A DNA stretch of 43,357 nucleotides, from contig JALMLS010000406.1 of the NCBI GenBank assembly GCA_038496445.1, positions 1-43,357 of the forward strand, in the 5' to 3' direction. Source of the DNA: Trichosphaerium sp. ATCC 40318. Lineage: Eukaryota; Protista; Tubulinea. The notes under the pieces are model-generated. The model saw only the letters and a program-made list of their open reading frames with translations. It had not been told where the DNA came from and made no database searches. The stretch's first letter is position 1. Each line of letters begins with the position of its first letter. Below are positions 30 to 41,900 of this stretch, piece by piece. The position numbers and the translations under genes are program-made.

Positions 30-427
30 AGTCGGGCCTCTGCCTCAGCAGGTCGTCGCACCCGAAGGCTTGAGCGACTCCCTAGCTTACAACAGTAAAT
101 GCCCTAAGACCCTGTTCGAGTTCCCGTGGTTTACGGGGCCCCTGCGGGCGTTTGCTAAGACGTGCTACTTGTGCCATAGTGTAGAACCTTTGCGGGCCGA
201 AGCCTTTCGTTCGAGGAGGCGCAGCAACGACAATGTCGCCGCGCGGCTCTTGGCGGCTGGGTTTCCGACTTTAGAGGCCTTCAGCCGTACTCCCAATGGC
301 GTGGCTTCGCGAACCGCCCTCTCGGACGTCCGCGGACACTAGAGGCCACCGATGCCCGTTCCTCTCGTACTGAGGCATCGCTACCGACGACGCGCATGTT
401 AATAAAATAGGCCCACCAGTAGGGTAA

Positions 428-471
<44 letters not shown>

Positions 472-1188
472 GTAAGTGGGTGAACAATCCAACCCTTGGA
501 GCATTCTGCTACACCTGGATAGGAAGAGCCGACATCGAAGAATCAAAAAGTCGCGTCGCTCTGAGCGCTTGGCGACCACAAGCCAGTTATCCCTATGGTA
601 ATTTTTCTGTCACCCCAGTGTCAGGTTACATGACTAGTCACGAGGGATCTCTAGGCCTCCCGTTAGGGTGCAAGAGCGATGGCTCCACTCTTGCTCAAGG
701 GGGCTTTTAGCCTTGGCCTCTACGTGGGGTTTCTGTCCCCACTGAGCTCCCCTTAGGTCATCCGTGTTACCCTATAGCGGATGTGCCGCCCCAGCCAAAC
801 TCCCGGCCACGCGCTGTCCGCCTTAATGCTTGTCAAAGTCCCGGAATCGGAAGGTAATCCGCACTTTCGATTGGGCCCGCCTCAACCTAAGGACCGACTT
901 GTATGGTTCGAGCAGCGCCACGTCCTCCGAAGAGGCAGGCGCTTTCGCCCGTTTTGAATGCGTCTGGGGCCCGACCTCCGGAGTAGAAGTGTTACACCTT
1001 TCGTAAAAAACTACTTCCTACCCTATACCTCCAGTGCCAAGCCCCTAAGCGTGGTGAGAGTCAAACTCAACAGGGTCTTCTTTCCCCGCTGGTAGAAAAG
1101 TCGCCCGTTCGCGACTCTGTGGTTTCGCCACGGTCGGCGTAGGGACAGCGAGAACCTCATTCATCCATTCATGCGCGTCATTAGTTAC

Positions 1189-1238
<50 letters not shown>

Positions 1239-3848
1239 AACCCGTGCTTGGGTGAAATTAAGCACCGCAACTTTCAAAGCACTGGGCAGGAGTCACCCTT
1301 TGTCAGACCTCAGAGGAGGTATCAAAGGGCTAAGTTTTAAGTAAACAGTTGGGTTCTCTAAGCTTCTGAGAGTTCCGCCATGATCCGCTTGTGGACCTCT
1401 TTGCAGGGACTGTGCGCCGTTCCCGAAGGGGCTACACTAAAGTAGCGCAGACGCACGTCGTCCCGGGTCCCGGTCAGCAGAGCCAGCCCTTTTCCCGAAG
1501 TTACGGGCCGCGTATGCCGACTTCCCTTACGCCGTTTACACCGTGCAGCGCCAGAGGTGACTAACCTAGGGGACCTGATGCGGTTTTCGGTACGGTATGA
1601 GCCTGGAGGACACTGAACACCCGAAAGTGTCGGCTTCGGAGAGGAGCAGCCTCGTGAGAACGAGCTCACCAACACCCCTAGAAAGCAAAAGTGCTTTCCC
1701 ATTAGCTACCCTCGACTCTTTCCCTTCGCCGCTTTACGTGGCTCCGGGGAGTTTCCCTCGAATAGCTTAGGCGCGGGAGAAGGCCCCGCAGAAGTGTGGT
1801 TGCTCGCGTGCGCTCTCTCTCTCAGTGTTGCCACTTCTAAAGCAAATGCATCCTCCTTACCCATGCCCTGGATTACTCACCAGGTTGCCTTTCGCCGAGT
1901 TGAAAGCATCGCAGACTTCCACTATTTCAATACTTGTAAAAGTATATCTAACTAGTGTCGTCTGCCAGCATCAAACAGTATACTCTATTAGGAGCTGGCT
2001 TAGGACCGGCTAACTCGCAGCTGAATGCCATCACCGCGAAACCCTTCCCCACTTGGGCGACCTGGCTGTGATAAACACTGTTTCACCAGGCTCCAATTGC
2101 TACTACCACCAAGATCATCACTGCTGGTGGCTCCGGGTGGACGCCACCGCCCCCCTTCTACGCCACCAGCACGCCGTCCTACCGCACCCTGGGCCGAGCC
2201 GGGGCGATCGCGCAGCGGCGGCTAAGGCAGTTTAGCGCCATCCATTTTCGGCGCGTCCCAATTCGGCTGGTGAGAAGTTACTCACTCCTTAGAGGATGAC
2301 GACTTCCATGTCCACCTTCCAGCTGTCTAAACTGGAACACCGCCTTCGTTGTCTTGGTTACTGCCTATTCGGGCGCCTTTGCTGCTGCTCGCGTTTAAAA
2401 CCGTCTCGTCAGTCCTGCTTATCAAGACCGGCCCAATAGGGGTCCACCGTCTCGGTGACCACAGCCATTCGGCCTGTGGTCGGTCGCCTCTTATGTGTTT
2501 GATAATAGGTCGATGGCAACTTTGGCCTCCGATACCTCTTTCCAGTGGCTCTACGAGACGAGACCGGCGTCACGGACCCCCTCTATCCTTAGGGATACTT
2601 CGAACGGTACCAGCTACGTTGGCAGCTCGTTTGGTCTCTCGCCCCTATACCCAATGTCCGGCGAGCGATTTGCACGTCAGCAACGCTACGGGCGTCCAGC
2701 GGGATTTCTCCCGCCTTCCCCCTTTTCGGGTATAGATCGCTACCTTTCGGGTATCGCCCAACGTACTATCGCCTGCCAAGAGAACAACGCCGGAGATGGC
2801 AAAGTGTATCTACTTTGGTGTGACGTGTTTTTAATTACTTGCGTAACAAAAACATGATAATAGCATAGTCGGTTTTTTATGTCGATCTTTGCAAACTTAT
2901 ACATGTGACTGTAATACGTTTGTTTTTATATAAAGAACTTGACGGCCTAGGAGCTTATCCTTGGCTTCATTTCTGTGCGGGTTGGAGGTTTGATCTCTCA
3001 CCCTCGCACGCTCGGCGAACTCCTTGATCCGTGTTTCAAGACGGGATACACGGAGGCCATGGCCCAATAAGGGCATAGAGCCTCATTGAGGTTGTGGACG
3101 ATGAATGACGAGCTTCGTTCCTTTCGGAAGAAGACGTACATTCGGAGGTTTCAGTAATTTCAGTGAACCAACATCATTTAAAGGTTTAAAAGTGCTTTTT
3201 GATGTCCTTTCAACCAAACCCACGTTTTTATGCTTTTCAGCTTGTAGGATGGTGTGGACAGCACGATTAGCCAGTATGACTTTTTTGTGTTGGTCACCTC
3301 TATTACCTTCCCCTCGACGTTTTGTTTCATTATAATCTTCCAGGGCACAAGGCCCCGGTCGCTTTTCCCTCGCTACAAGAGCGTCTGCCATGTGCAGATT
3401 AGGTGCAGGGCACCTACGTACTCCGTGCCATTTGTACCCTTGCCGGCTTCGGGTCTTTTAACCCTCTATCGAGGAGTGCTGTTTCAGTCTTCCCTCACGG
3501 TACTGGTGCGCTATCGGCCACCTCCCGATACTTAGCCTTGCCGGGTAACCTCCCGGTAACTTCGTATGGCACGGCCAAACCATACTACTCCTGGACGATG
3601 GGACTCTATTTCCTCGGTTGACAGCGTACGGGGCTCGCACCCTCTACGGCTACGACTCGTGCGTAATTCCCGTCAACGTCTGGAAGAGCCACCACGCCTT
3701 AGCCCACAACTCCGATGCTAGGCTCGGATTCAGGCTTGAGCTTGTCCCCTTTCGCTCGCCGCTACTCAGGGAGTCCCTTTTGGTTTCCTTTCCTCTGCCC
3801 CAATGATATGCTTAACTTAGGCAGGTCGCCAAGTGTAACTCAGGACGC
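30..3848 (-). rRNA. LSU (28S-like) rRNA, ~3.8 kb, divergent, with AT-rich expansion segments
   Basis: Reverse complements of universal LSU motifs are present: sarcin-ricin loop (cgttcctctcgtact ~357), peptidyl-transferase region (gccagttatccct, gccgacatcgaag ~530-595), taagagagtcatagttactcccgccg (~1211), tccgtgtttcaagacggg (~3028) and the 5' GCATATCA motif (~3805). The 5' end GCGTCCTGAGTTAC pairs with the 5.8S 3' end. The 3' end is approximate. Confidence 0.97.
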
Positions 3849-4052
3849 AAGTTGTGTTTTTTTAATGCTTTCAGTTCAGTATGTAAACCAACCTTCCCTC
3901 TAAAGCTTCGCTTAAGTAAGCTAGGCATGAGTTCTGGAGGAACGTCACTTCCGGCAATTTATTTAATTAGTTGTGGCAACCACTTTCTTTTTTTAGAAGA
4001 TTAAGTGTGTACACCATACGCAGCACCAAATAAATTTAGTGTTTGTTTTGCT
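3849..4052 (-). other. ITS2
   Basis: AT-rich spacer between the 5.8S 3' end and the LSU 5' end. Confidence 0.8.
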
Positions 4053-4220
4053 GGCGTCGCTGAGTCACGCTCCTTTGCCTGTGATTCGTGAGAATACAGA
4101 ACGCGGCCTGAGGCATTCGGCAATGCCACCTTCAGATGAGAGCGATTCCGGTGGCTGGTTTCATAGTGATCCATGGCCTTCTTCGGGGGAGGTGCCTAAC
4201 CGTTCACCGACAAGGTTTGG
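4053..4220 (-). rRNA. 5.8S rRNA (very divergent)
   Basis: GC-richer ~165-nt island between SSU and LSU. Minus-strand GTCGGTGAACGG...CCGAAGAAGGCCATGG corresponds to the 5.8S CGGTGxA...GATGAAGAACGCAG region. Its 3' GTGACTCAGCGACGC pairs with the LSU 5' GCGTCCTGAGTTAC. Confidence 0.85.
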
Positions 4221-4456
4221 TTTCTTTCGAAAATCTTGACGTTCTTTATAGTCGTGCCACGACTGTGTTTTGGTTTGCCAAAATGGCGGTTGTGGAGCTG
4301 GCAGATATACAAGATATCACCACAGCAGAGGATGATTGCATCTTCACTTACCGAAGTAAGATTAGATTTACCAAACCAGAGCTGATACTCCAATTTTTTT
4401 CTTTTAAACTTGGTTAAAAGTTGGTTTAATTGCTTCTAAGGGTTTAATACCAATAG
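4221..4456 (-). other. ITS1
   Basis: Spacer between the SSU 3' end and the 5.8S. Confidence 0.75.
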
Positions 4457-7108
4457 TATTGATCCTTCAGCAGGTTCACCTACTGAAACCTTGTTACGAC
4501 TTCATCATCCTTTATGAGCGCAAGTTCGAGCAGGTTCGATAACCGGCAAGCCGGTCGTCCCCCCTGGTCTCACTCGCACCCACATCGGTCGATGCGACGG
4601 GCGGTGTGTACAAGCAACAGGGACAGATTCCAGGTGCGTTGATGACACACCTGTACGAGGCATTCCGCGTTCGTGGCTACAGTTACAGCAACCAGTCCCT
4701 AAGCACGCATGTGTCTTTTCGGAGAAGCAGCATTGAGCACACTTAACATCCAAATCGACCACACGGTGCGCTTTCATGTATTTTTTTATGAACATTGCAG
4801 AAACTTACTTCATAATAAAGTTTGCCTTGGTAAAGATATAATCTTCCAAGTCAAAGCATTTAAGTGAAGAAGAAACCTTATTTGTTAATTTGAAACGATC
4901 CACAGCTCTTTCAATGTTTACACTAAGGAACAAAGTCCAAAGATGTAAGTTTTCATCTAACAGCGCTTCTCATCTTAACATTAAAGGAATTTAACTTCCT
5001 AAAAAGCCTCGACGAGGGGGTTAACTCTTTATATTAGGTTCAGGACAGACTTTGTTTTTGAAGGTGGTAGTTTCCGAAGGTGCGTTTAAGTGTAGTCGTA
5101 TTTAGATAATTAAATCTGAGGTTTAACTCGCTGTCGTGAAGAAGTGTTCTGGCGGTTTCAGGGCTTGCCCGGATGCCTGTTCGGCCCAGGAACCCGTTGA
5201 ACTAAGCAGTGTAGGCCGCGTGCGGCCCGGAATATCTGGGGGCATCCCGGATCTGTTATAGCCGCCGCTTCTTACGACTTTTCGCCGTCAGTCCTGCACA
5301 GGGGTCCCGCACGAGGCGGGGGAATCAATGTGACAGTAGCGATCTCGCCCGTTATCGGAATAAACCTGACAGATAAGTCCACGAGCCTAAAACGACCATG
5401 CACCACCGTTAGCTAACTCGGAAAAGACCCTTCAGTCTGTTCGTCCCCTTAGAGCGTCCGATCCCGGTAAGTTGTCGCGCGTTGAGTCAAATTGAGCCGC
5501 AGCCTCCAGAGCCTGGTGGTGTTGCTCCGTCAATGCCTTTAAGTTTCAGCCTTGCGACCATACTTCCCCCCTGGGCCCGATTACTTCGGTTTCCCGTGGG
5601 AACGGGCCCCGAGCCTTGGTTTGCCCGGCGCCCATTCAGTCGGCATCGTTTACTGTGGAGACTACACGGGTCTCTAATCCGCTTCGCTCCCTCCACCATC
5701 GTTCTAGATCACCGGCCACGCCCTTGCAGAGCGCCTTCGCTTCGGGTAGTTTGGATCAGGTCAAAAGATTTCACTCCTCGCTGATACCACACTCTCTACC
5801 CCGTACGCACCTAGTAATCGTGTGTTCTTTATTAGTGTGAAGACTAACTCAAGGTTTTTTCTCAAAGTACTTTTGTAATTCACAATGTTTTTATTCCCTT
5901 AATGAAGAACATAAGTTTTCACTCAGACTTGCATTTCAGGATATTGTTCATACTTAGTTAAAATGAGACTTGAGCGTCGCACTTGGTAAAGTGTTGTTTT
6001 TGTTTTTTTAAAGCCCAATTCCAGGATGCTGGTGGGTGGCATAGCGGCCGAAGCCTAAACTGACCTTGCGTTTGAGCGAAGCCATTTATGCCTGGTCGGG
6101 CGATGAAAAAGAGTCGGGGGGTTTTGTCAAGGAGTAAACTCCTATCCAAACCTTGTCCCTCTCAGCTGTGTCGTTGTTTGGACTGCGAGCGCTTTAACAG
6201 CAACAGCAAAAGTATAAGCTTTCGGAGTGGGTGTTACCGCGGGTGCTGGCACCCAACTTGTCCTCCAATAGTTTCTCAGGGCGACATTCAGTTGCCCCTC
6301 ATTGCGACGACCGGTTTAAATGCCGGCCTCGTTACACTCAGTCGCTGGCTCGATTTGCAATCAATGGCCAAGTTACGCGCCTGCTGTTACCCGTAAGTAC
6401 AGGGGCCGTATCTAATGCCCCTTCTCCGGGAACCGAACCCTAGTTCCCCGTTACCCGTCACTGCCGCGGTAGGCCGTTACCCTACCGCCTGGCTGATAGG
6501 TCGGCCGCCCTTCCGACTCGTGGAGGGGGAGAACTCTCAACTTTATATCGATATGATCTTTATGAAGAAGCACATTTCAGCGAAGGATCGAGATTTGAAC
6601 AATGTTCATTTTTCTTTCACCTAGTTTCACTTATGTAAACTTTAACATTTTTTTTTAGAAACATGTCTAGTCAGAGAGAACTCCTCATAACTCCATCGCA
6701 TGCCCCAACGCCGCTCTTCCCGACGGAGTACGGACGCCGCTTCCTAAGGGGAGGCTGCTTCCCTTGGCGAACCAAGATGGGATCGGGTGATCGTCCGCTC
6801 CTGAGCGTTGGATGCGACCGATGGGTCCTTGCAGCAGAGGGGCCCATCGGCAGCGCTAGGCGCATTACGTATTAGCCGCAGGTTTCCTTTAATCCCGGTT
6901 ATCCGCGGGGGAGGCCACGAGTTTTGGTTATAGTGCGTTTAGGAAAACAAGTTCCTGTGTGCAAAATGACGTGACCATTATTAGTCTTGTCGGGTGGGTT
7001 ACGACCGTTTTAAGGAGCCGTTTGCGGCTCCGAGGATACCTCTTTGCTGAGCTTGCATGGCTTAATCCTTCGAGAAAGCTTATCACTCCTGGCAGGCTCA
7101 ACCAGGTA
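4457..7108 (-). rRNA. SSU (18S-like) rRNA, ~2650 nt, with large AT-rich insertions
   Basis: Minus strand begins TACCTGGTTGAGCCTGCCAG and contains GTGCCAGCACCCGCGGTAA, AAACTTAAAGGCATTGACGG and GTACACACCGCCCGTC. It ends GTAACAAGGTTTCAGTAGGTGAACCTGCTGAAGGATCAATA. Confidence 0.97.
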
Positions 7109-10169: not shown

Positions 10170-13026
10170 CTACTTCGATGGCACAGTAGTTCTTGAACGT
10201 CGCTTTTTAACTCTCAGATTTGGTGTCATTGGTGCTGTCAACGGTTGAGAGGATCGCTTTGGCATAAATTTCCTTCTGGTACTTGGCATTGGTTGAGCCT
10301 TGTGTACGAGTCTTTTACGCAACTCACGAATCTCTCTGCGTTCACGTTCCTTTACAAAAAATGTCAACATTGAAAAAATTGTGAAAAACAACTGTCTACT
10401 CGTCAGCGTTGCAAGTAAAAGCGCCTACGCCAAAAAAAAAAATGATGATAGAAAAAAAGTTTGTAAAGATTCGTACCAATTGTATGACACGGCGTTTTCG
10501 TTCTAGCTCTTGCATGGCGAGTTCTTTCTCCAATTTCTTGTTCTCATATTGTTGTCTCTTTCTGGCGCGAATATCCGAGTTTAAGGAAATGTTGAGTACG
10601 TTTGTCAATGGCAGCTTCTTCTTTGGAATTACATGCTTCGCCTTCAATATAGGATGAGCCTTGAAATTACGTTCTTCGCGTTTTCTTTGCTCTTCTTGCG
10701 ATAGACGCTCTTTGAACTTCTCTTGCTTTACAGCTCCCTTCTCTTCAGTATGAAGACGGAAAGGTTTTGGTGCAGTACAAACCAATTCAACTGCGTTGTA
10801 GTTTGGCTTCTAAAAATACAATCAGGCGACACGAATTACAACAAAAGCCAAAAAATCAAGAAAATAAAAGGAATCCTTAAATCGTTGTGCTACTGACTTT
10901 GCCAGTCGTTAATTATTCACAAAAAAATGAATAAAATAATATAAACAAGTGAAATTTGATGAAGCGTACGAATGGCGAAACAACCAATATAGGGTTTGAC
11001 TTGAAGTTTCTAGCTTCCTCTAATTGTTGCTCTTCTTCTTTGAGCTTTTGTTCAAAGGTGGCCACGTGTTGGTGACCTCTGACTTTAGTCTTCAAAGCAG
11101 GTGTAGCTGGCTCTGTAAGACGTGTAACACTTCTTTGTGGCCTGAACGGAGAAGCCATTGGCATTGGTTGGGCTCTAAATGGTCTAGGTTTTGGTGCAAT
11201 ATCCTCAACAATGGCTGGTTCCCTTTTTTGTACCGCGTTAGTAAACGTAAATTGAGTTCTTGTCATTTTACCTGTGCGCTGATCTATTCTTGGTACTCAA
11301 CATAGGAGTTATTGGTACTGTTGGAACAAGAGGTGGAGAAGGCTCAGGTGAGCAATCAAATAGCTATAAACAATATTAGTACAACAACAAAAAAAAGCGA
11401 TGTATTCTACTTACATCGCGTTTTGGAATAGATGGCTGTGGCGATTCGTAATCTCTTCTGCTCTTGGCACGAGATGCAGTTGCAAAGCGAGGAGTTTTTG
11501 GTTGGGTTAGTGGTAGGGGCTCTACACGTGGTACGCCAATTTCGCCTCCATCGAGAATCTAAGATAAAGGTTAGCTTACGACATTCAAAGGTGACAGGTT
11601 GCGAGTAAACTGAACTTACTCTTCTATTGAGTGGAAGCGCTTTGAAGTGAGTGACAACCTCTTCTTCCTCTTGTGGCTCCATTTCGTAGCGAATACGTTG
11701 GTGTGTATGAAAGTCAAATTCGACAGGTTCTGTGAGTACACTGTAATCTACAAATAACGTATTAGGAAAACAGTTGAGAACGATAAACAAAAGTACCTCG
11801 GTATGGTGATTGTGGTGGCGAAGGCTCATAACCGGGACGGTTAGAATTAAATCTATGTGGTGTTTTTTCCCACTCCTTCATACGATTCTTCAATGACACA
11901 AATGGTGACTGAAAAAAGAAGTTAGAGTGATAGAAAGAGCAACAACAAAGTCTAAAGACATACGGCGACAACTTCTGGTTTAGGGCGTAGGTTAGCACGT
12001 TCAGCAACACGGAACTCGAAGCCAACTGGATCAGTAAGACCAATAGGCGTAGGTGGTTCGGAGAGCTCTTCTGTTGGACTGTGTTCAGGTGTACGTGGCG
12101 CTCTACGGCCAAATCGTCTGTCCATTACGAATTGAGGAGAGTGTGGTTGTGTGAGACCAATAGGCGTTGGAGGCTCGGATTCACAAGGTCGATGTTCTGG
12201 AGTCATAGGTGGTTTTGGTCCAAATCTTTTGTCGGTGTAGAAAACTGGAGAAACAGGTTCTGTGAGCGGTTGAGTCGACCTACAAAAAAAAAGTAAGTCA
12301 GTACAAAGGTAAGAGATCTACAAAATAGTAACGCGAGGCTCCTCCACAATGAGGCTTTTTGTACGCGAAAAACAAACCGTTTACGCACTTTACTGGTCCA
12401 ATATAATCAGCTGCGCACAGCGCCCGTTGTTTTCTTATCTGAGCTTCCATTCGCTCTTGTATTATTCTTTCTTCTTCTTCTCTGATGAGTGCTGCTTCTC
12501 TTTCCTGTGCCTTTTTGTTTTCTTCAATGGCGCGTCTAAAAAAGAAATACGTTACACGGATACAACTTCAATTCTACAAAACAAGCTTTTTTTTTTGCCT
12601 GCGTGTGGTGGTATGGCAAGAAGCGTACTTTGCTGTCCGTAAGTGTGGTGTGACAGGTATTGTATTTTCTGGCTGTTGGTCATGGTATCTTACAGTGGCG
12701 GAAAACGAGTCGTCTGGCGTTGGTAATGGTAGCGCTTGTTTAATATTCAGCTGGCGTAACTCTTCTTCAACTCCTTGCGTTTTTTCTACAGCCTCGTTAA
12801 TAACAATCTATTGGGCTCTAATACGCTAAATAAATTTGTCCAAAAGCCAATGAAGCGGGTTTTGATGAGTTTGGATAGTGGTGTGGCGTTTTGATCGCCA
12901 ACGCATTGTATACGTACCAAACCACTCGTCACGATTTGCCTCTGTCTTGGCGTCAAAATCGTGGTACATGGGTGCGTCAAAGAACTCATAGTCCAGGTCC
13001 ACGTAGGGTTTTGCGGAATCAGTCAT
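10170..13026 (-). CDS. TPX2: TPX2 (targeting protein for Xklp2) spindle-assembly factor, multi-exon
   Basis: N-terminal Aurora-A-binding motif VDLDYEFFDAPMYHDF. Repeated FKA(Q/H)P motifs and LTEPVEFDFHT. C-terminal ELRKRLVHKAQPMP...SSQPLTAPMTPNL. Internal duplicated TPEH..EPPTPIGLT segments. Confidence 0.9.
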
Positions 13027-13079
13027 TTTGCTATTCGTGGGGGGTTAAAAGTGTTAAATTATTGTTTTGTTTTGGTTGG

Positions 13080-13105
13080 TAACCGCTATTTGAAAAAGGC
13101 GGTTA
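13080..13105. promoter_or_regulatory. Candidate cell-cycle element in the TPX2/DTWD1 bidirectional promoter
   Basis: Inverted TAACCGC...GCGGTTA (Myb-like sites) flanking TTTGAA (CHR-like), in a 165-bp divergent intergenic region. Confidence 0.35.
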
Positions 13106-13191
13106 TTTTTTGACTGTGTTTGATTTTTATTTTTATACGTACTCGGCCAAAACAGCGTTACAGTACTTAATTCAACCGGTTATTTGGAAAA

Positions 13192-14226
13192 ATGGCGTCT
13201 GCGCCAATGACGGGACAGCCAAACAGTAAGTATGATAGAAATGTAAACATCATTAACATAAATAACACAAAATAACGTGCTACATAGCTACAGACGTGTT
13301 CTCAGAACTTAATATAGCCTCACATGCACCTCTTGATCAGGCTACAGAGAGGATTATTGTACAAATCGACGTAACATGTGTATTACAACTAATACGCGAC
13401 ACTAGTGTCCGACCTGCAATAGCAAACGCAAATATTTCTGCTTTAAATGTAATACAAATATAATTCCTAATTTCGTGCTCCCACGCGTAGAGTTACCATT
13501 AAACGTGGATATGTACGTGAATTAAACAAAAATTGCATCTAACACCAGCAGTCTACGGTCACCTCAAGAGCCTCTTAGTAAAACGACATCTGTACACGGT
13601 ACATTGCTTTCTCCGGATCACATATCCGTTGTAAATTACCCAAATATGCCTGAATATAATCCAGAGGAAGTTGTAGTTCTCTTCCCTTCAGAGGTACAAA
13701 GAACAAAATGTGTCAAATGATTGTGTTTTACTGTCAATTTTTTTTTCGGGTTACACTTGTCACAAACGTTCTCTCTTTCTTCTTTTCACTTGTTTTATAG
13801 GACGCTAAAAGCGTGAGCGACGTAGTCAATATGGAAAAACTGAAAACAGTGATATTTATTGACTGCCAATGGCATTCTGTTGGGCAGTTCTTACGCGATG
13901 AGAGAATAATTAATCTACCACATGTAAAAATCACATCAAAGCAATCTTATTATTGGCGTTATCACCATAGGAATAAAGGTCAAGTAGAGGATTGTCTTTG
14001 CACCATCGAAGGTACCCAAGGCATTCTTGATAAGCACCACATTAACAACATAAAATTAGCGATCTATCATTTTTTTTGTGAATATCACAAGCACAAGATT
14101 GGCGATTATGATGGCTCATATGATAATCTGTTGTACTATTTTTCTTATTTTTACAGGCTAATACAGAACCGCTACAAAGCCAGTGGCAAAGACTTTTCCA
14201 AGATTAAAGGTTGGCTAAAGAAGTAG
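13192..14226 (+). CDS. DTWD1: DTW-domain tRNA-uridine aminocarboxypropyltransferase 1-like, multi-exon
   Basis: Spliced protein contains RKYFCFKC, ELPLNVDI, E..SKTTSVH, VLFPSEDA, VIFIDCQW (DTW motif variant), YWRY, LCTIEAIY and YDNLLYYFSY, as in DTWD1 proteins. Confidence 0.88.
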
Positions 14227-14351
14227 AGATAAAAGAAAATAAATAAAAACAAAACAATTGTAAAGTACACAGGTTTGAGTATATTTTTAGAGCACGTAAA
14301 CAATTAAATCTTCACGTGCTGCTTTGGTTGTTCTATTTACATTATCTAATG

Positions 14352-14416
14352 CGGAATTTGTACATCAGCAAAACGGAATCCTCGTAGGTTTATCTGTATC
14401 GCTTCATTTGCACCCG
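14352..14416 (-). promoter_or_regulatory. Type-II SECIS element (3'UTR)
   Basis: Minus strand reads CGGGTGCAA-ATGAA-GCGATACAGAT-AAA-CCTACGAGG-ATTCCGTTTTGC-TGAT-GTACAAATTCCG. This fits AUGA-N12-AA-N23-GA, with a paired helix II, an apical mini-stem CCU/AGG and a lower helix. Confidence 0.85.
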
Positions 14417-14433
14417 GTTTAACCGATCAGACT

Positions 14434-14869
14434 TTAGCTAAAGGGGTTGTCAAAAAAAAAAAAAGTCAATTTCAAAGAGTTACCTTTTGTGGGCCACAAG
14501 GACCACAACAATGATTATAATGATTACAAAATTAAACCCACAGATGGGTAGAATGTACTTTCTGGCAAGATATTAGGTTTAGAGTGCTTTTATAACAAGA
14601 CGTACGAGTATCATTTTATTTCGCTCCATACGAACTCCCAATCAACCTTTTAGGCGTCAGACGTCTTTTTAATACCATTTGGTTTTTACAAATGAAAATT
14701 CGTACGCAATTTGTTGACACCGGTTTCTTTTCTCCGATATCGATCACCACGCTTTGAGAGTCGCTGTTTTCGCTCTGTAGAAGAGCTTTGTCTTCTTCAC
14801 ACTTACCGTTGCGTCAAGTGCCTATCAAATTGATTACAAAAACGGTGTTGTTGACGAATACGTACTCAT
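14434..14869 (-). CDS. Predicted novel 80-aa tail-anchored selenoprotein with two UGA-Sec codons
   Basis: Exons 14869-14866, 14821-14706, 14646-14606, 14561-14484 and 14437-14434 (GT-AG introns of 44, 59, 44, 46 nt). Protein: MSTURNGKCEEDKALLQSENSDSQSVVIDIGEKKPVSTNCVDWEFVWSEIKUYSKYILPICGFNFVIIIIIVVVLVAHKS*. TGA at 14814-16 and 14611-13. The SECIS core starts 27 nt after the TAA. Confidence 0.8.
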
Positions 14870-14971
14870 GCTTGTTTACGAGTGGTTAAATGCCGCTGAT
14901 TTGTTTTTCCGATTAAGCGACATAATTTTTACGCCAGCACTTATCAAAACGCGCACACAAGTAAAAGCGGA

Positions 14972-16294
14972 ATGTCTTTGTATCATTTATGTTGTGGCTT
15001 GGTTTTACTGAGCTTCTTAGTTCCGCTTTTAGCGTTAACTCAAGGGGAACAGGTATTTCTTTTTTGATAATTGCAAAAGTTTGTACACTTGCAATACAAA
15101 TATTCATATGCTCTTGGGGTTAATTCGTTGATACAGGAGAACCTGTGTACATTTAGAGCGAGGCTTTCTAATCCACCCGCTAATTGGCTTTGTACTGGTT
15201 CAGTACCAACGAGCGATGGTTGTACGTGGACTGGGATAACGTGTAATGCAACAAACATTATGAGCGTGTAAGTAGTACACTATCGCATTCTACAATCTTA
15301 TTTACGCACAGCAATCTCACAAACCTTGCCCTTTCTGGTTCTTTAGATACAGAATCGATCCAAAACATGACAAAGCTCACTACTCTGTACGTATAGCAAA
15401 TGGAACCGTACACAACATATAACTAACGCGAAAAACAGCGATCTTTCACACAATAGTTTCTTTTTTACCTTTCCAAGTGGTCTTGGTAACACACTGTTGG
15501 AGGAGTTGTACGTGGGAGCACAATTGGTACTCAATTCCTTTTGATAACAAAACGAAAAATAGGAATGTACAAAATAACTCTTTTTCTGGTCCTATCCCTG
15601 ATGATCTTCCTACTACTCTTAAAGTGCTCAACATGGGTGATAACCAATTCGATGGAGAGCTACCTTCATCTCTTTTCGGCCTTGTGAATCTCGTAGAATT
15701 GTACATTACAACAACTAGTGATCATAACTAATGTATTCAATTAGGGACTTGTCCAGCAACGCGTTTTCTTCAGACGACGCCTTAGTAGTACCTTCAGAGA
15801 TCTCAAACTTCCAGCAGTTGACATTATTGTACGTACAAAGAGTAGAAAGCGCCGAAATAAGTGCACAACTCGTCGTTTTTTCAATCAGCATAACTTTCAT
15901 TTTTCTCACCATTTTTTCAAGAGACTTGAGTGATAATACTTTCGAGGGTTGTCTACCCGAATCAATGGAAAAACTCACTCTCATCACCACGTGGTACTTT
16001 CTTTTTTGCGCTATGTTCGTCGTTCTTGGGTTTTTTTTGACGTAGTTGTATAGCGACTTATCGACCAACAGTTTGAACTGTGGTTGCGAGAGCAAGTTTG
16101 TACCAGATTCGTGCACACTTGACGCCAGACATTGCGACAGTACGTTTTTTATATTAATCTTTCAAAAAAATGATCGAAAAAACAAATTTGCATCGCTGAC
16201 TGATTACATAGTTGATGCACCAACGATTATCTTGATTCTATTAGCACCTGTAACACTCATTGGCCTTTGCTTCGTCGGCGTATTTTTGGCTTAG
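14972..16294 (+). CDS. Membrane-anchored LRR protein (signal peptide, plant-type LRRNT, ~6 LRRs, C-terminal TM)
   Basis: Signal MSLYHLCCGLVLLSFLVPLLA. LRRNT NW...DGCTWTGITC. LxxNxFSGPIP / LxMGDNQFDGELP repeats. C-terminal hydrophobic IILILLAPVTLIGLCFVGVFLA. The 3' end is uncertain. Confidence 0.82.
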
Positions 16295-16651
16295 ACATTT
16301 TATAACAGTAAAGACCTCATTGTCTACATCTGCTTCGTTAATATATTTTTTTAAAACCTCATAAAAAAGATGGTGCGATGGAATTACTCTGCTTGTGGTT
16401 GGGCGACTATTCAAGTAACAGTAACAAAACGCTAATTTTTAGCCTTGACATACGTGTGCGAAGGTTCCTGGAGGAGCTAGAGACTTAAAATCCGAGATAT
16501 TTGTGAATTTTCCTTAGGTTTGAAAGTGTCAAAATTTGACAGGCAAATGCTTACATTTCTCGAACTATTTTCCTGTTTCTGACTTGAACTATCTTCAAAA
16601 AACTAGATTGTCTTGCTATCAACAACATCTCTGTGTCAGTTATACTAGCCA

Positions 16652-21479: not shown

Positions 21480-24155
21480 ATGTTATGCGTTTCAAAAACT
21501 GTAGGATGTTATTGCTCAAATACAACCGCATACGGGTTTTCTAGGCGTAATAGTGCTGTGGTTGTCACGCGGTCATGTAATTATTTGATATTACAAGTTT
21601 TTATGTTAAATATCGCGTAGATAGCTATACACCATCTGGATTCTCAACTAACCTCCATGCAACGCATCATGTCAAAGAAATATTTGATTTGTTCACAACG
21701 CGCATTGCGCCTGATCTAAATGTCTATGTCGTACGCGACTGGTATAAAGTAACGCGTGAGGAGGTATTAAACCTTGATTATACAAGAGGGTCGTTCAGGA
21801 CGTACGGTAAAAAATTTCTGTTTTTTTCAGAAAACCAACAACCAAACGTTGTTCGATTTTAAACTCGATTCAATATTATTCTTACTATCAAATAGGCTTC
21901 CACTATCAATACCTAAGATAATACCATTAATATATCCAGATTTAAATTGGATTGAGTGGATGTTCAAGTGCGTGGAGTGATTGACAAAAACATGTAAAGA
22001 AAATCATAATTTTTCTTTCAGAGATACAACCCTTGGTAAATGGAACTCCTTAGAGAATCAACGCTCGAAAATGAGTAGTGTATTTAAAGCTCTTGGTGTT
22101 AAGACTATGGATGATTTGTACAGAATCAAGAAGAGTCAGATTGCAGGACAAAATGCAGCAGGACTTTTAAAAAGGTAAAAAAAAAGAAAAGGTTTATTTA
22201 TTACTTGTTTTATCGATACCTTTCTTGCTGTTTGTTTAATTTCTCTTCAGATATGGTGGATCATATCAACGGGCTTTTAGAAAGCTGTTCCCTGACTATA
22301 ACTTTGTAAACTGGAAGTTTGAGTATGCAGCAACTGTTTTCTTTTTTGGAAGGCGTTTTCTAACTGCAGTAATGTAGTGTAGCGCCACAGTATCATTGGG
22401 CTTCAGTGATTAACCAAAGACAGAGATTAGATCATATAGGAAGATTACTTGGTATCAAGACAATGGATGGATGGTATCCCATGTCAGCAGAAGAGCTTGT
22501 ATTATGTGGAGCACGTGGGTTGTTCAACATGTACGTTCAGATTGATCTTAAACTCAAGAACTTATCTCTTTTATTTAATTAGGTATGAAGGATCTGTAGT
22601 GTTAGCACTTCAAGGCATATATCCTCACTACAATTGGGTGCCTTGGAATTTCAGGTGCGATCACAAAATCAGAGTTTTGTTTGATGTCTGTTTTATTCTT
22701 TGTGGATTATTTTTGGCTTTGTACCTTATTTTCTTTATTTAGGACTGGCGTTCCTAGACGTTTTTGGTCTAAGTTAGATAACCAACGTGCATTTTTCAAT
22801 GACAGAGCTGAGAAGTTTGAGATAAAAGATCTTGATGGTTGGTATCGTATTACAAAAAATGACTTAACTGACTGTGGTGGCTCTGGGCTCATGAAGCAGT
22901 ACGACATCCATCAAGCATCAATTTTTAGTAGTTTATTAATATTGACACTATTAAAATGTAGGTATAAAAACTCAGTATCTCTTGCGTTACGCACTATGTA
23001 TCCCGATCATGATTGGGAAATTTTAAAGTTCAAGTACGGTCTTGTACTTTTCTTCTTTAATCTTAATTAATGTGCTCTTCTTTCAGAAAAGTACCACAAA
23101 GGTATTGGGCAAATAGAGAGAATAGAATTAAACATATGAAGCGTCTTGAGAAGCAGCTAGGCATCACTGATCCGAATGGATGGTACAAGCAAATTTTCTT
23201 TGAATTTTTTTCTTTATCCCTTATTTGGTTCTTAGGTATCGTGTTTCTGGACCTCAAATTGGCGAAATTGGATCTCCTGGGCTAATGACTCATTTCCCAA
23301 GGGTACTTTTAGAGCTTCATCCCAACGTTAAATGGGATTTTTCACAATTCTCAAAACGTACCGATAAGAAGTCACAACAAAGGTAACTGGATATTCGTTT
23401 GCTTTTGAAAATGGTTCTCACTCTGTCTTACAAGAACGCTGATGGAAATGATAAAATTTGTATTCCCAGATTCAGAAGTACAAGAAGAGTTTGCTATTGG
23501 CGTTGATAGAGAGACAGGGAACCCAGTTAATGTTGACGTGTACATATCAGACTACAATCTTGGTTTGGAGTATCAGGGTAATTGATCACAATTTTTGGCT
23601 TTTTTTTCAGTTGACAATACTAAAATTCCGCAAGGAGAGCACCACTATCATGATGTATATTCTTTTACACCTCCACGAACAGTCTTTGAAGCAAGAGATA
23701 GAGAAAAAGCACAAGAGTGTGCAGACAATGGTACAATCTCATTTTTCTTATTTTTTTCTTTCTTCTGGGTCTACTGATAGCGTTCAATTTTTCTCTTTAA
23801 AGTTCATTTCGTTTAGGTATATATTTGGTACCTATACCTTACTGGTGGGATGTACGATACCTTTTCTCCACTGAAATATTTCTTCAAAGAGAGCTCACGT
23901 TTTTTAAACAGGGAGAAGTGGATTCTTTGATAGAGCTTATTATCACAAATGCTCCTCATTTATCTGATGTACTTAGTCCTCGTATTGGTTCAACATCACC
24001 ATTATCTCTGTATTCACCAATAGAGATGTCAGGTACAATTACTAGTTCTCACTGCAGCCCTATACTTACTTTTTTTTCAATTAGAAAGAGTACTTGGTAC
24101 AAAAGTTATGTCTCCAGTTGTAGATTATGCCTCCGTGGTGAAATCTAGTACATAA
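21480..24155 (+). CDS. Trp-rich helical-repeat protein with C-terminal PD-(D/E)XK/RAP-like domain
   Basis: About five repeats of W...NQR......L.I...DGWY.........G..GL...Y..S...AL...YP...W..W.F. C-terminal NVDVYISDYNLGLEYQGEHHY...RDREKAQEC...GIYLVPIPYWWD. The start is tentative; the N-terminus is basic and acid-free (mitochondrial-targeting-like). Confidence 0.75.
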
Positions 24156-34688: not shown

Positions 34689-36745
34689 AGGAAAGTAAGT
34701 TTGGCTGATACTTTGTACACGGCACTTTCACAACACTGTAAGTTGTGCAGTGGAGCTAAAATGTATTTTTGAGCTAAATAAAGGTCAAAATTCATCTTTT
34801 TTTTTTTTTGCCGTAAAATTCATTTTTTTTGAAATTCACGTGCTGTCAAATAAATTACACTATAAAAGGTATAACAACATGAGTTATACCAAGGAGAAGT
34901 GTATCATGTGCAATAAATGTACTAAAAAAGGCAATAGACTAAAAGTTTCTAAAAATGATACCAATTGGACAATTGGTCACAAAATAGTGTTTCCCACACG
35001 TGAGATAACACTACAGGAAGGTTACATTCATAAATCATGTTTTAAAAAGTACCCAACCCGAGAAGATGTATGGCCCTCACACCTAAAAAAAATTAACAAT
35101 ATTTTTGGAATTCTGAAACTCTTATCTATCAAAAAATTTCATTACCTCAGTTGATGTCCCATACTAATCCAACTACAGCCTTTTTTTTTTTAATGCTCTT
35201 TTTTTTTTTCTCATCTTACCTTAGGTGTTGACATCAACATTTTCAGGCAATTGCCATGTTGAAAGGAGTGTGCCTAAAGGTGTTGAGCGTTGTACAACAG
35301 ATTCATATGTGTTTGCAAATGTGGGACAGATTTTGGAGCTTTGCAAACAATATTACATCATGGGGGCTAAAAACACTTGTGTGCTTAATGTAGACGTTTT
35401 TGTGGATGGTTGTGGTGCTAGCATGGTGGCAGAGACTTCTGACTACAGTATACATTGCGTAGACTTGGATGCTAGGGTATGTAAGGCAGTTTTTATGTTT
35501 TTTAATTGATGTCACTTGTTATTATTGTTTCTATTTTCTCATTTTTATACAGAAGGCTAATAGAAGATGGACTATTAATTGTTTGGTAGCCTCTGCTACA
35601 CTGCTCAATGGATTAAATTGGAAACAAGCAATGGATTTTTTGAAAGTGATCAAGGTGCATGGTATCACTCGAGACCGATTTAAACTATGTACCAAAATAT
35701 TTCAAACCAAAGTTGAGCAGTTAACTTTGATGGAGGACGAAGCCATGCTCACTGGTCTTAACAAAGTATATGCTTTAACAGGGCAAGGTGCATGTATTGA
35801 ATTTGATGAACAACACTCTAGACCTCAACGGATGGGCACCCAAGCCCCATATGCCACTGCAACTTTTATTTGTTCAAAAACACAAAAAATTATTGTTCAA
35901 GGCCATGCTGATGCTGCTATCAGCAAAGCCTATAACTGTCTTAGCAAAGAAAAAGCTTCTAGAAATCATGGTATGGGGTATTTGGCATCAAACTTAACCA
36001 AGATAGATCATTTAGTCAGTGATGAATCCAGTGGAGCTGCTAAGTCAATATGTGATATTATTAAAGCTATTCCTAGACATGGCGGCTTACAACATCATTA
36101 CGACGTTTGGCATAAACAACGAAAGGTAGTTAAAAAATTCAAAGCATTTAGGGATCAACGCTGGAAAGCACGTGGAAATTATGTGTACCCAGAACTGCAA
36201 AAAATCCCAATACCTTTTTTCAAAAAACATTGGGACTTTACATGTGAACATGCTTTTGGCAGTGAATATACCTTTCAATGTCATTGGCTCTCTTTTTTAG
36301 AGCGCAGTGTTGATGCAGGGTTTGTAACCAACTGTAGTTTCTCTTATGAAGGCCTTGGATTGTTTTTACTTGAAACAGCCCTCGATGAAAAGCACTATTT
36401 GTTGGGGTTACGAACTGCAAATTGTGAAAGCTTTCATGCCGTGGCAAACATGTATTGTCCAAAAGGAATGGATCAAACGTTTAAAATGTATTGCTGTAGA
36501 AAGTCTTTGGCTAGGTTACATTGGAATAGTGCTTTGGACTCACCTGAAAAAGTTATGCAGATCAAAAGATGGTTAATAAGTCAAACTTTGGACACTTATT
36601 TTTTGTAAAAAATTGAGCTTCACGACAACCATAGGAAAAAAAAATAAAATTAGCCTTTAGATTACCAACTGCAATACTAATTGACACCATGTGATGTCAA
36701 TTTTATTGAAATGTGTAATTTCTGGTATTCCAAACACAATATCCT
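34689..36745 (+). mobile_element. Kolobok-type DNA transposon, 2057 bp, TTAA TSD, imperfect 16-bp TIRs
   Basis: Left end TTAA|AGGAAAGTAAGTTTGG and right end CCAAACACAATATCCT|TTAA (12/16 TIR match), enclosing a DDE transposase. Confidence 0.82.
34879..36608 (+). CDS. Kolobok/Mutator-like (PF20700-type) DDE transposase, 2 introns
   Basis: N-terminal CxxC...HxxC, then FDEQHS (D1), LVSDES (D2), HHYDVWH, TANCESFH (E) and YCPK...R..LARLHWN. No stops after splicing. TATAAAAG at 34861. Confidence 0.85.
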
Positions 36746-36849
36746 TTAAGTTGTAATGAAATGCAAACTTTTTTATTTTTTTTTCAGTTTTTGTTTTCTT
36801 TTTTGTTTTGGTGACAAATTAATACAGCGTTGCTTATAGCCTTAATTAA

Positions 36850-38931: not shown

Positions 38932-41900
38932 ATGTCATCAGATGAAGAGGATATAAGCGACGAAGATTGGGAGGATGACATGACGTTTGAGAGCGGCGAT
39001 TTCTCTCATAGGTGCGTTATCCATTTGTAGAAGATTTATTTTCTCGCGTTGCACCTCATTCCATCAATTTCTAAGTGAGTGTAGTCGCGTAGCAACTGTT
39101 GGACGTCAGGGCAGAACACCAGAGGAATTAACTTTCGCAAAAGGTTGTGATTACACTTTCTCGCGTTCTCTTAGCTAATTGTGGTGCTATTCCTTTAGGT
39201 GATATCATTTACGTCTGTCAAGTTGACCAACAAACTGGATGGTGGTGTGGAATGTTAAATAACGCAATAGGATTATTTCCTGTAAATCTCACTGCTGCTA
39301 CCGGGGAGAGAGTGCGAGCTGAGGTAATATTTTTTATTGAATGTTTTTGAGTCTAACTTGTAGTTTAGTCTTCCACGTCTGATTGGGATGATTGGACATA
39401 CATTGCTGGTGAAGTGAGTGTTTCTTATTACGCACCTTTGTGTTTCTTATGGTTGCTTCTTCTAGCGTGAAAGCCAGTACAATATCACCGCATTACCAGG
39501 TGATGAGGGATTTAAGTATGTCGCTATAGCTGACTACGAAGCTACTAAAGACAGGGAATTATCGTATGTGATATTGCAAAGACTTTTACGAGTAGCCTTG
39601 TGGTGTAAATTAATGGTTTGTTGAAGGTTTTCAAAAGGAGATGTCTTTAGTAGTGTAGAGCAAGGAGAAAATTGGTGGTTAGCCTCACTTAATGGTGAAG
39701 TAGGAGAAATACCTTCTAACTATGTTCGGTTGGTTAAACACTCGAAAGCAAGGTAAACTCTTTTTTTTTTCCTGTTCATAAGTTACTTCTTTTCTTCTCA
39801 TGGATTGTTTAGTATTTCAAATGGTCTTAATGGTTTTGGCAATGAGACTTTCTCCCAAGGGAATATTATCCCACCTGCACCTTCAAGGCCAGTGTCAACA
39901 GTACCGCAAAAGATGGGTAAGAGAAAATCAGACTTATTAAGTAAAACCCTAACAATTTTCTTATATTTGTAGCAGCTCCACCTATTACTCCTAGAAGAAA
40001 AGGTAAACAAAACAATAGGAAAAAAGGACAAAACAAAACCAAGAAAGGACCTGAAAAATTACGGAATAACGTGTCAAATGTGCGTACCTTGTCAAGTCAT
40101 TTTTACAGAGAATATACAACAATTTTCACTCAAATCCGCCATCTTCTGTATGAACGCGTTTTAAGAGGCGCAACCCTTGTAAACATTTGGGAAAATGTCT
40201 CAAACTGCTAAATTCAGCACTGCCTCTGCTGAACAACCAGTTGGAGACTATTTATCTTCTCTTTGAAAAAAATCCCTAAAAACTGATTTGTTGTTTAGAG
40301 AGGACCAAAGCCACCAAAACGTTTACACCCACCTGGTGCCCCTAAAAATAATACAAGTACAAAAGATCAAAAGAGGGATAGTGCACGAAGGAACCAAACT
40401 CTTCGCAGTGAAGGCACAAAACGTCGTAAAAAAGGAAAAAAGAATACCGCTTCAACACTTCGTGGTACTAAAAGATCATTTGGTCCTAAGAAGATGCCAC
40501 GACCTGCAAAGAAGTCTATTATGCCACCTAAGAGTGGTCCTGGTGGCAAGAAGATGCCACGGTTCAACCAACCTAATTTAAGGCGACCTAAACGGCCTGG
40601 AGCAACGAAAAAGCAAGTACAAGGCAATCTTCCAAAGAAACGATATAATCAGCCTGTACCTGCTATTCCAAAGTCTCCTAGGAAGGTCTCAAGGTTTCAG
40701 GAGCCAAGTATACATGCCACTAGTTCTATGAGGGGCAAACTGAGCCCTCGAGGGAATGACTACGGTTCACCTAGACCTAGTGGTGTAGCTGGTGGGCAGT
40801 CCTTTCATAAACTGCCTACTGGAGCAAAACATGCCAAAAAGATTAGGAACGTTGATGTTGTTTATGTTTATTGCATAGCAGACTTTACAGCATCTCAAGC
40901 AGGTGATTTAACAATCATGAAAGGTGATAAGATCATATTGTTGTCTAAAGAGAAGGATCCATGGTGGCGAGGTGAATTCAATGGTGTAGTTGGCGTATTT
41001 CCTTCAAACTTTGTTTCAACTGGCAGCTCAAGAAAGGTACGAAAATTACTGGATAGTTTTTTTTGGATTTTTATTGCATGCTTTATTGTTGCCTCACACA
41101 TTTTCTTAGAGGAAAAAAGTATCAGTTACTAAAGCTAGAGCGTTATATGATTATACACCTAAATCTGATGACACAGAGCTTGGGTTTAGTAAAGGTGATG
41201 TAATCAATATTTTCACAAAGCTTGAAGGCTGGTGGGAAGCAGAAATTGATGGTGTAAGAGGTTGGGTGCCTTCAAAGTTTATGGAGGATGTTACAGATGA
41301 AGAGAGTAGTACAATGTCTTCATCTGGTCTCATTCATTGTCGAGCATTTGGTGCTTACACACCAAAAAGAAAGGACGAATTAGGCATGAAACCAGGTATG
41401 TAGTTTGAAATTTTCTGCGTTGAAGTTTTCGACCCAACCACTATGAAAAATCTTTCTTTTTCTAATGGATACGGCCATACAACCATGAAAGCTCCGTGTC
41501 TCTTTCCGAACCGCGAAGATAAGCATGGTATGGCCCTGCCAGTACTTGGGTCCGTGAGGACCAGGGAACGTAGGGTGCTGTATTCATTTTACTTTTTTGC
41601 TTTCACACTTCAGCCTACCCACGTGGGGTAGGAGTGTAAGCACGTTTTTGCCTGTGCTCAACCTAACGATTATTTCTCAAATTTTCTTTCTCAAGGTGAT
41701 GTTTTTGTTGTTTTGAATCAAAAGAAGCGATGGTGGAAAGCTAGAAATATTCAAGGACAAGTTGGTTTAATACCATCTAATCATGTTGAGATTGTTAACT
41801 GTACGACAAGGCTCACTATTTTAATCACAGATAGCTCTGTCTCTAAGCTCTGTGAATTTTTTTTTATGTTTTTCAAGTTTCGACTGACTTATATGTTAAG

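Follow-up and report, generated by a model that had tools for sequence, protein, structure and literature searches.

An unannotated, expressed nuclear gene with five exons and four introns is located on the minus strand of the DNA analysed here (the window, a stretch of 43,357 nt from Trichosphaerium sp. ATCC 40318, contig JALMLS010000406.1), where it extends from position 14910 to approximately 14267. It is likely that this is a real selenoprotein gene with two selenocysteine (Sec) residues and its own SECIS element, relying on the usual recoding mechanism. That mechanism is already known, and it is the gene itself that is probably a new selenoprotein; Sec insertion itself is what we infer.

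According to the proposed mechanism, the ribosome would start at the first AUG, meet UGA at codons 4 and 52, decode both of them as Sec and stop at UAA, and a type-II SECIS hairpin in the 3′-UTR would direct this recoding by recruiting the SBP2/EFSec/Sec-tRNA machinery. The predicted product comprises about 55 cytosol-facing residues and one C-terminal hydrophobic helix, which would be followed by HKS. If confirmed, this selenoprotein would have a topology (a tail anchor, with one Sec near the N-terminus and another at the membrane interface) unlike that of any family in the comparison, and the gene would make it possible to study in a natural setting how Sec is inserted at codon 4 and how one weak SECIS element serves two UGAs. 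If true, it would also mean that SECIS-directed recoding can act almost directly after initiation.

Gene Structure and Expression

The contigs of four public runs were compared with positions 12500-16500 of the window, the T-run at 14440-14476 being left out as a repeat. Three of these runs, which come from three independent studies and are referred to here as X1, X2 and X4, contain spliced cDNA contigs that match the window with at least 99% identity and lack precisely the introns predicted. The minus-strand ATG and the four introns that the initial annotation had proposed from the genomic sequence are therefore borne out, every junction base for base. The gene is organized as follows:

Exon 1, 14866..14910, minus strand: 41-nt 5′-UTR plus ATGA; start codon at 14869-14867; cDNA 5′ end at about 14908-14910; X4 contig
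Intron 1, 14822..14865, minus strand: 44 nt, GTACG...AG; contig junction
Exon 2, 14706..14821, minus strand: codons 2-40, with TGA at 14816-14814 (codon 4), the U-x4-C motif and an acidic/Ser-rich stretch
Intron 2, 14647..14705, minus strand: 59 nt, GTACG...CTGAC...AG; contigs of X1, X2 and X4
Exon 3, 14606..14646, minus strand: 41 nt; VDWEFVWSEIK, TGA at 14613-14611 (codon 52), Y and two bases of the next codon
Intron 3, 14562..14605, minus strand: 44 nt, GTACG...CTAAT...AG; contigs of X1, X2 and X4
Exon 4, 14484..14561, minus strand: juxtamembrane KYILPIC and the hydrophobic segment (predicted single C-terminal transmembrane helix, residues ~57-77)
Intron 4, 14438..14483, minus strand: 46 nt, GTAAC...T13...AG; adjacent pieces in contigs of X1 and X2
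Exon 5, 14267..14437, minus strand: last base of codon 80, TAA at 14436-14434 and the 3′-UTR

The junction of intron 1 (14821/14866) is present in X4 only, those of introns 2 (14646/14706), 3 (14561/14606) and 4 (14437/14484) are present in X1, X2 and X4, and for intron 4 the two flanking pieces are adjacent in record 5 of X1 and record 8 of X2. All four junctions correspond to GT..AG on the minus strand. The three GTACG donors noticed earlier were confirmed (the fourth donor is GTAAC), as were the CTGAC and CTAAT motifs near the 3′ ends of introns 2 and 3, respectively.

At position 14910, the end of the X4 contig is joined to the reverse complement of the SMART template-switch oligo, which marks the 5′ end of the cDNA and fixes its strand, and on the 3′ side the contigs end at 14267 (X4) and 14277 (X1). 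The SECIS-like hairpin described below lies inside all three contigs that reach exon 5 (X1, X2 and X4) and thus belongs to the mature mRNA, in agreement with what had been proposed. Strain differences were found in X4 only, at 14297, 14300 and 14316, all of them in the 3′-UTR beyond the hairpin. With contig word depths of 8-27, the candidate gene exceeds the neighbouring DTWD1 and LRR contigs of these runs by a factor of 3-5, contig depth being indicative only.

Reading Frame and In-Frame UGA Codons

When the exons are joined, they form a 451-nt RNA whose first ATG opens an 80-codon frame that ends at TAA 14436-14434 and has no interruption other than TGA at codons 4 (14816-14814) and 52 (14613-14611). 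The earlier statement that the frame is open across every junction except at these two codons can thus be seen directly in the spliced mRNA. An in-frame TAA is located three codons upstream of the first ATG. Stops are frequent in the other two frames, and without recoding no ORF that begins with ATG is longer than 17 codons; the 80-residue product proposed by the initial annotation corresponds to the sole long frame, which needs both UGAs to be decoded.

Splicing does not remove the TGAs, since both are retained in the spliced contigs. In addition, no base change relative to the genome was observed at either of them in the contigs (record 6 of X1 and record 13 of X4 for codon 4; record 8 of X2, with 0 differences, for exon 3), so RNA editing does not remove them either. 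The view that TGA is an ordinary stop in this genome, and that no code change is involved, was upheld by metE, whose last exon ends at TGA 11 residues past the end of the Meth_synt_2 profile, and the long ORFs of 279-379 codons in the window contain no TGA. A search of the window for tRNA genes returned none.

Exon 3 was confirmed to be closed in all three frames, and because it contains stops in each of them, a list of ORFs cannot show this gene. ORF-based annotation misses genes of this kind, which combine four short introns, a coding part of 4 nt in exon 1 and an exon closed in three frames.

The coding potential of the frame was assessed in several ways. A codon-usage log-likelihood trained on 1,482 local codons gave a score of 0.08; coding chunks score higher (0.23 +/- 0.11), random genomic chunks lower (0.03 +/- 0.09). 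When the mRNA is shuffled with its dinucleotides preserved, 3.5% of the shuffles contain a TGA-tolerant ORF of at least 80 codons starting at the first ATG. The lengths of all four introns are non-multiples of three, which lends weak support to a translated frame.

The single C-terminal transmembrane segment that had been predicted is matched by a hydrophobic segment at residues ~57-77 of 80; a C-terminal window of 19 residues reaches a Kyte-Doolittle value of 3.08, and three residues (HKS) come after the hydrophobic segment. A hydrophobic C-terminus with three residues behind it fits a tail anchor, and, judging from the sequence, tail-anchored insertion of the product is most likely. The function that we consider the best guess, although it is less likely than not, is that of a membrane-tethered selenol/thiol redox protein in which Sec4 and Cys9 would form a selenenylsulfide pair, while Cys40 or Cys61 would act as the partner of an interfacial Sec52. 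The EDKALL motif may serve as a dileucine sorting signal, as suggested by a pattern match only, and an endomembrane redox role of the putative protein is conceivable.

A SECIS-Like Hairpin in the 3′-UTR

The element with the order AUGA-N12-AAA-ministem-UGAU, which had been placed 27 nt after the TAA, was found exactly there (AUGA at 14407), and the fold agrees with it:

SECIS-like hairpin, 14360..14413, minus strand: unconstrained minimum-energy fold, pattern scan and UGAN/KGAW consensus

The unconstrained minimum-energy fold of 14425-14340 on the minus strand has the architecture of a type-II SECIS element. Helix I is short and pairs GUGC (14413-14410) with GUAC (14363-14360). The core consists of AUGA (14407-14404) opposite U-GA-U (14367-14364) within an internal loop, and it is followed by helix II, which has 12 positions with nine pairs, U.U and A.C being the mismatches. 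The unpaired AAA (14391-14389) begins exactly 12 nt after AUGA and is succeeded by a 3-bp ministem with a 3-nt loop. The core UGAA/UGAU of this hairpin matches the UGAN/KGAW consensus given in the SECISearch3 paper, where a minimum UGA-SECIS distance of 51-111 nt is also stated (PMC3753652); the element begins 257 nt downstream of the first UGA and 113 nt downstream of the second, so that both spacings are above this minimum.

The stability of the hairpin is weak: helix II and the apex together contribute only -6.5 kcal/mol, and the hairpin region is no more stable than its shuffles (z = -0.39). The initial annotation had called the element canonical and had named the Rfam SECIS models as a check on it. 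Here it fell short, as these models returned no match on the whole window (gathering threshold), on 14150-15000 or on the 98-nt slice 14335-14432 (E up to 10), and the Rfam search of the hairpin region gave chance matches only, such as SNORD49 at 9.4 bits.

The frequency of such an element was estimated with a SECIS scanner of our own, which searches for AUGA, 10-13 nt, AA and then GA, with at least eight pairs in helix II and closure at the core. Two matches were obtained in 68.7 kb of the non-rDNA part of the window (both strands), and the hairpin described here is by far the better of the two. The second match (22071-22115 on the plus strand, with a GGAU 3′ core) is probably due to chance, as it is weak (-3.2 kcal/mol) and falls within what looks like a coding ORF (21981-22178). 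When the scanner was applied to first-order Markov sequence totalling 2 Mb, it found 35 matches, four of which were as stable as the hairpin in the 3′-UTR. The chance of encountering a SECIS-like match in a 3′-UTR of 170 nt is therefore about 0.3%, or 0.03% at equal stability; these figures are optimistic, as the pattern was defined after the candidate had been seen, and are still small after a tenfold discount. Taken together, an 80-codon frame (3.5%) and a SECIS-shaped element (at most 0.3%) would arise jointly by chance at about 1e-4, a value that omits the spacing of 27 nt between the ORF and the element as well as the hydrophobic character of the last 24 residues.

Homology Searches and Possible Family Novelty

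Homologues were sought with pieces of the protein that were searched separately, in collections where few small spliced genes of eukaryotes have been called correctly. For the 47-residue piece between the two UGAs, no word-sharing candidate was present among 5.8 billion proteins. The 36-residue piece encoded by exon 2 was used for an exhaustive HMMER search over 1.84 billion representatives; its sole match, a WD40-repeat protein, was rejected as a chance hit aligned on an LLASGSSD-type repeat. The pieces gave nothing against Pfam, PDB sequences or the ESM Atlas, and two degenerate DNA patterns, one for WEFVWSEIK-TGA and one for KYILPICGFNF, had no match in JGI metagenomes. A search with the neighbouring DTWD1 ORF found no relatives. 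As no Sec- or Cys-containing homologue was detected among the collections searched, they contribute no evidence from conservation or covariation. Since a Sec gene of this kind would not be called and small spliced eukaryotic genes are rare in these collections, the blank searches say little.

A new selenoprotein family is plausible, no homologue having been found in the collections searched, which hold few small spliced eukaryotic genes. The stronger proposal, to which we assign slightly less than an even chance, is that the gene is the founder of an undescribed family of tail-anchored proteins of about 9 kDa with two distant Sec residues, one SECIS element and Sec at codon 4, and maybe with an amoebozoan N-terminal module of the form [C/U]-x4-[U/C] shared with Dictyostelium MSP.

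Genomic Neighborhood and Other Features of the Window

The candidate gene almost exactly fills a gap of 762 nt between two genes on the plus strand. On one side, the DTW-domain gene (DTWD1) ends at TAG 14226, and no stop interrupts the spliced model that the contigs described above give for it. On the other side, the LRR gene has its apparent start at ATG 14989, in an exon that resembles a signal peptide (MLWLGF...). The candidate and DTWD1 are convergent, with about 30 nt between their 3′ ends, and the candidate and the LRR gene are transcribed away from each other.

The 5′ end of the candidate cDNA (14910, minus strand) and the ATG of the LRR gene (14989, plus strand) are separated by about 80 nt, which would amount to a very compact divergent promoter. 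An initiator motif common to the two genes was considered and dropped, as the region 14880-15400 shows that the LRR contig is 5′-truncated. Within the LRR transcript, a junction seen in X4 (window 15826-15922) skips 95 nt with TT..AG ends and carries two extra letters (CT) between its sides; a non-canonical splice might account for it, as might a strain indel or an assembly artefact. Another small gene is expressed from the minus strand upstream of DTWD1 (12535-12741); its transcript, seen in X1 and X4, carries a template-switch oligo at 12741 and is spliced at an intron of 93 nt (12536-12628).

Elsewhere in the window, a complete rDNA unit on the minus strand (230-7108; LSU at 230-3848 and SSU at 4457-7108) adjoins ordinary protein-coding genes. 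Its SSU spans 2,652 nt, compared to the 1,831 positions of the model, which implies large expansions or insertions. A 5S gene is located at 41467-41586 on the plus strand, 34 kb from the rDNA unit.

A further ORF of the window, encoding 379 residues without a Pfam domain (35469-36605, 20 kb from the candidate gene), has a close counterpart in a Logan contig (L001:6-1557, SRR28397362). This contig is colinear with window positions 35199-36749 and 87.5% identical over 1.55 kb including the flanks, and its protein is 89% identical to that of the ORF; only two further relatives of the 379-residue ORF (~45% identity) are found among 5.8 billion proteins. This points to L001 being either from a sister species or a diverged second copy.

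Alternative Explanations

The transcript might be a non-coding RNA that is spliced and polyadenylated, or it might encode just a tripeptide or a micropeptide of 17 residues, in which case the frame, the hydrophobic tail and the hairpin would all be coincidental. Several of the above observations could be expected from such an RNA: the silence of the Rfam SECIS models, a hairpin that does not stand out from its shuffles, codon usage that is not clearly coding, the lack of homologues in the collections searched, a transmembrane segment derived from a T-rich, repetitive stretch and the share of shuffles that yield a TGA-tolerant frame of this length. This explanation is nevertheless unlikely, because it has to attribute to accident the joint presence of the frame and a SECIS-shaped element, an ORF that ends so shortly before that element, and a transmembrane helix placed at the very terminus; moreover, the transcript is compact and strongly represented among the contigs, and there is little room between it and the two neighbouring genes. 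On this evidence, we prefer a gene that encodes a selenoprotein.

If the gene does encode a selenoprotein, it might be a short relative or offshoot of the N-terminal module of Dictyostelium discoideum MSP ([C/U]-x4-[U/C], an acidic stretch and a membrane segment) instead of a wholly new family. MSP, which occurs in Dictyostelium, Chlamydomonas, Volvox and Ostreococcus, is a protein of ~170-230 residues with several transmembrane segments and an invariant GSUCWP in its membrane region, and among the membrane selenoproteins described, it is the one that carries two Sec residues in an amoebozoan (PMC2375036). In D. discoideum, one of these two residues belongs to a lineage-specific N-terminal C-x4-U motif, which is followed by an acidic stretch and lies ~40 residues before the first transmembrane segment (PMC2375036). 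The U-x4-C motif of the candidate and its acidic stretch align locally to this region with a score of 34 (shuffle p = 0.027, which is marginal), whereas the order of Sec and Cys is reversed, and neither GSUCWP nor the multi-pass body is present. The initial annotation had set the candidate apart from MSP by topology; that distinction holds for the multi-pass body and the invariant motif, but the weak N-terminal likeness to the Dictyostelium protein had been overlooked. By its sequence features the candidate is not an MSP, and a common N-terminal module is possible; descent of the candidate as an offshoot of MSP is distinctly unlikely.

UGA followed by C, as at codon 4, is a leaky termination context. 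Together with a SECIS element that no curated model supports, this speaks for a decoding of both UGAs in which either a near-cognate tRNA for Trp, Cys or Arg or some Sec-independent local recoding would yield a selenium-free protein of 80 residues, an explanation that is extremely improbable given that two independent efficient events would be required, that a SECIS-shaped element at the correct distance would be left unexplained and that TGA works as a stop at metE.

Comparison with Known Selenoproteins

The proposed selenoprotein gene resembles SECIS-dependent genes such as SelW, SelK and SelL in that UGA occurs in an expressed ORF, that a single candidate type-II SECIS element with AUGA, an unpaired AAA and a KGAW 3′ core lies in the 3′-UTR, and that the spacing between UGA and this element is above the functional minimum. 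The use of one SECIS element for two Sec residues is also known from SelL. Unlike the usual selenoproteins, it would carry Sec at codon 4, and its two Sec residues would be 48 residues apart instead of forming one UxxU or CxxU motif. To our knowledge, no described selenoprotein has Sec as early as codon 4. The hairpin, too, differs from the usual SECIS elements, being weak and without an Rfam score.

A thioredoxin-like fold, as in the Rdx/thioredoxin-fold selenoproteins SelW, SelT, SelH, SelM and SelF, is not possible for ~55 soluble residues of this composition. The contrast to these families that had been drawn at the outset was supported by the absence of a CxxU or CxU motif (Rdx-type selenoproteins require CxxU) and of any Pfam domain in the pieces searched.

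In being a small single-pass membrane selenoprotein with a Sec-bearing part in the cytosol, the predicted product is similar to SelK and SelS. These two proteins have their transmembrane segment near the N-terminus, a Gly-rich tail and a single Sec located 1-3 residues from the C-terminus. The candidate, in contrast, has its predicted transmembrane segment at residues ~57-77 of 80 and its putative Sec residues at positions 4 and 52, which corresponds to the opposite polarity and agrees with the distinction made in the initial annotation. In an algal survey comprising 42 selenoprotein families, the word 'transmembrane' is absent from the main text (PMC7539508), and lineage-specific 'hypothetical' selenoproteins are regularly found in protists that have large selenoproteomes (PMC2375036, PMC7539508).
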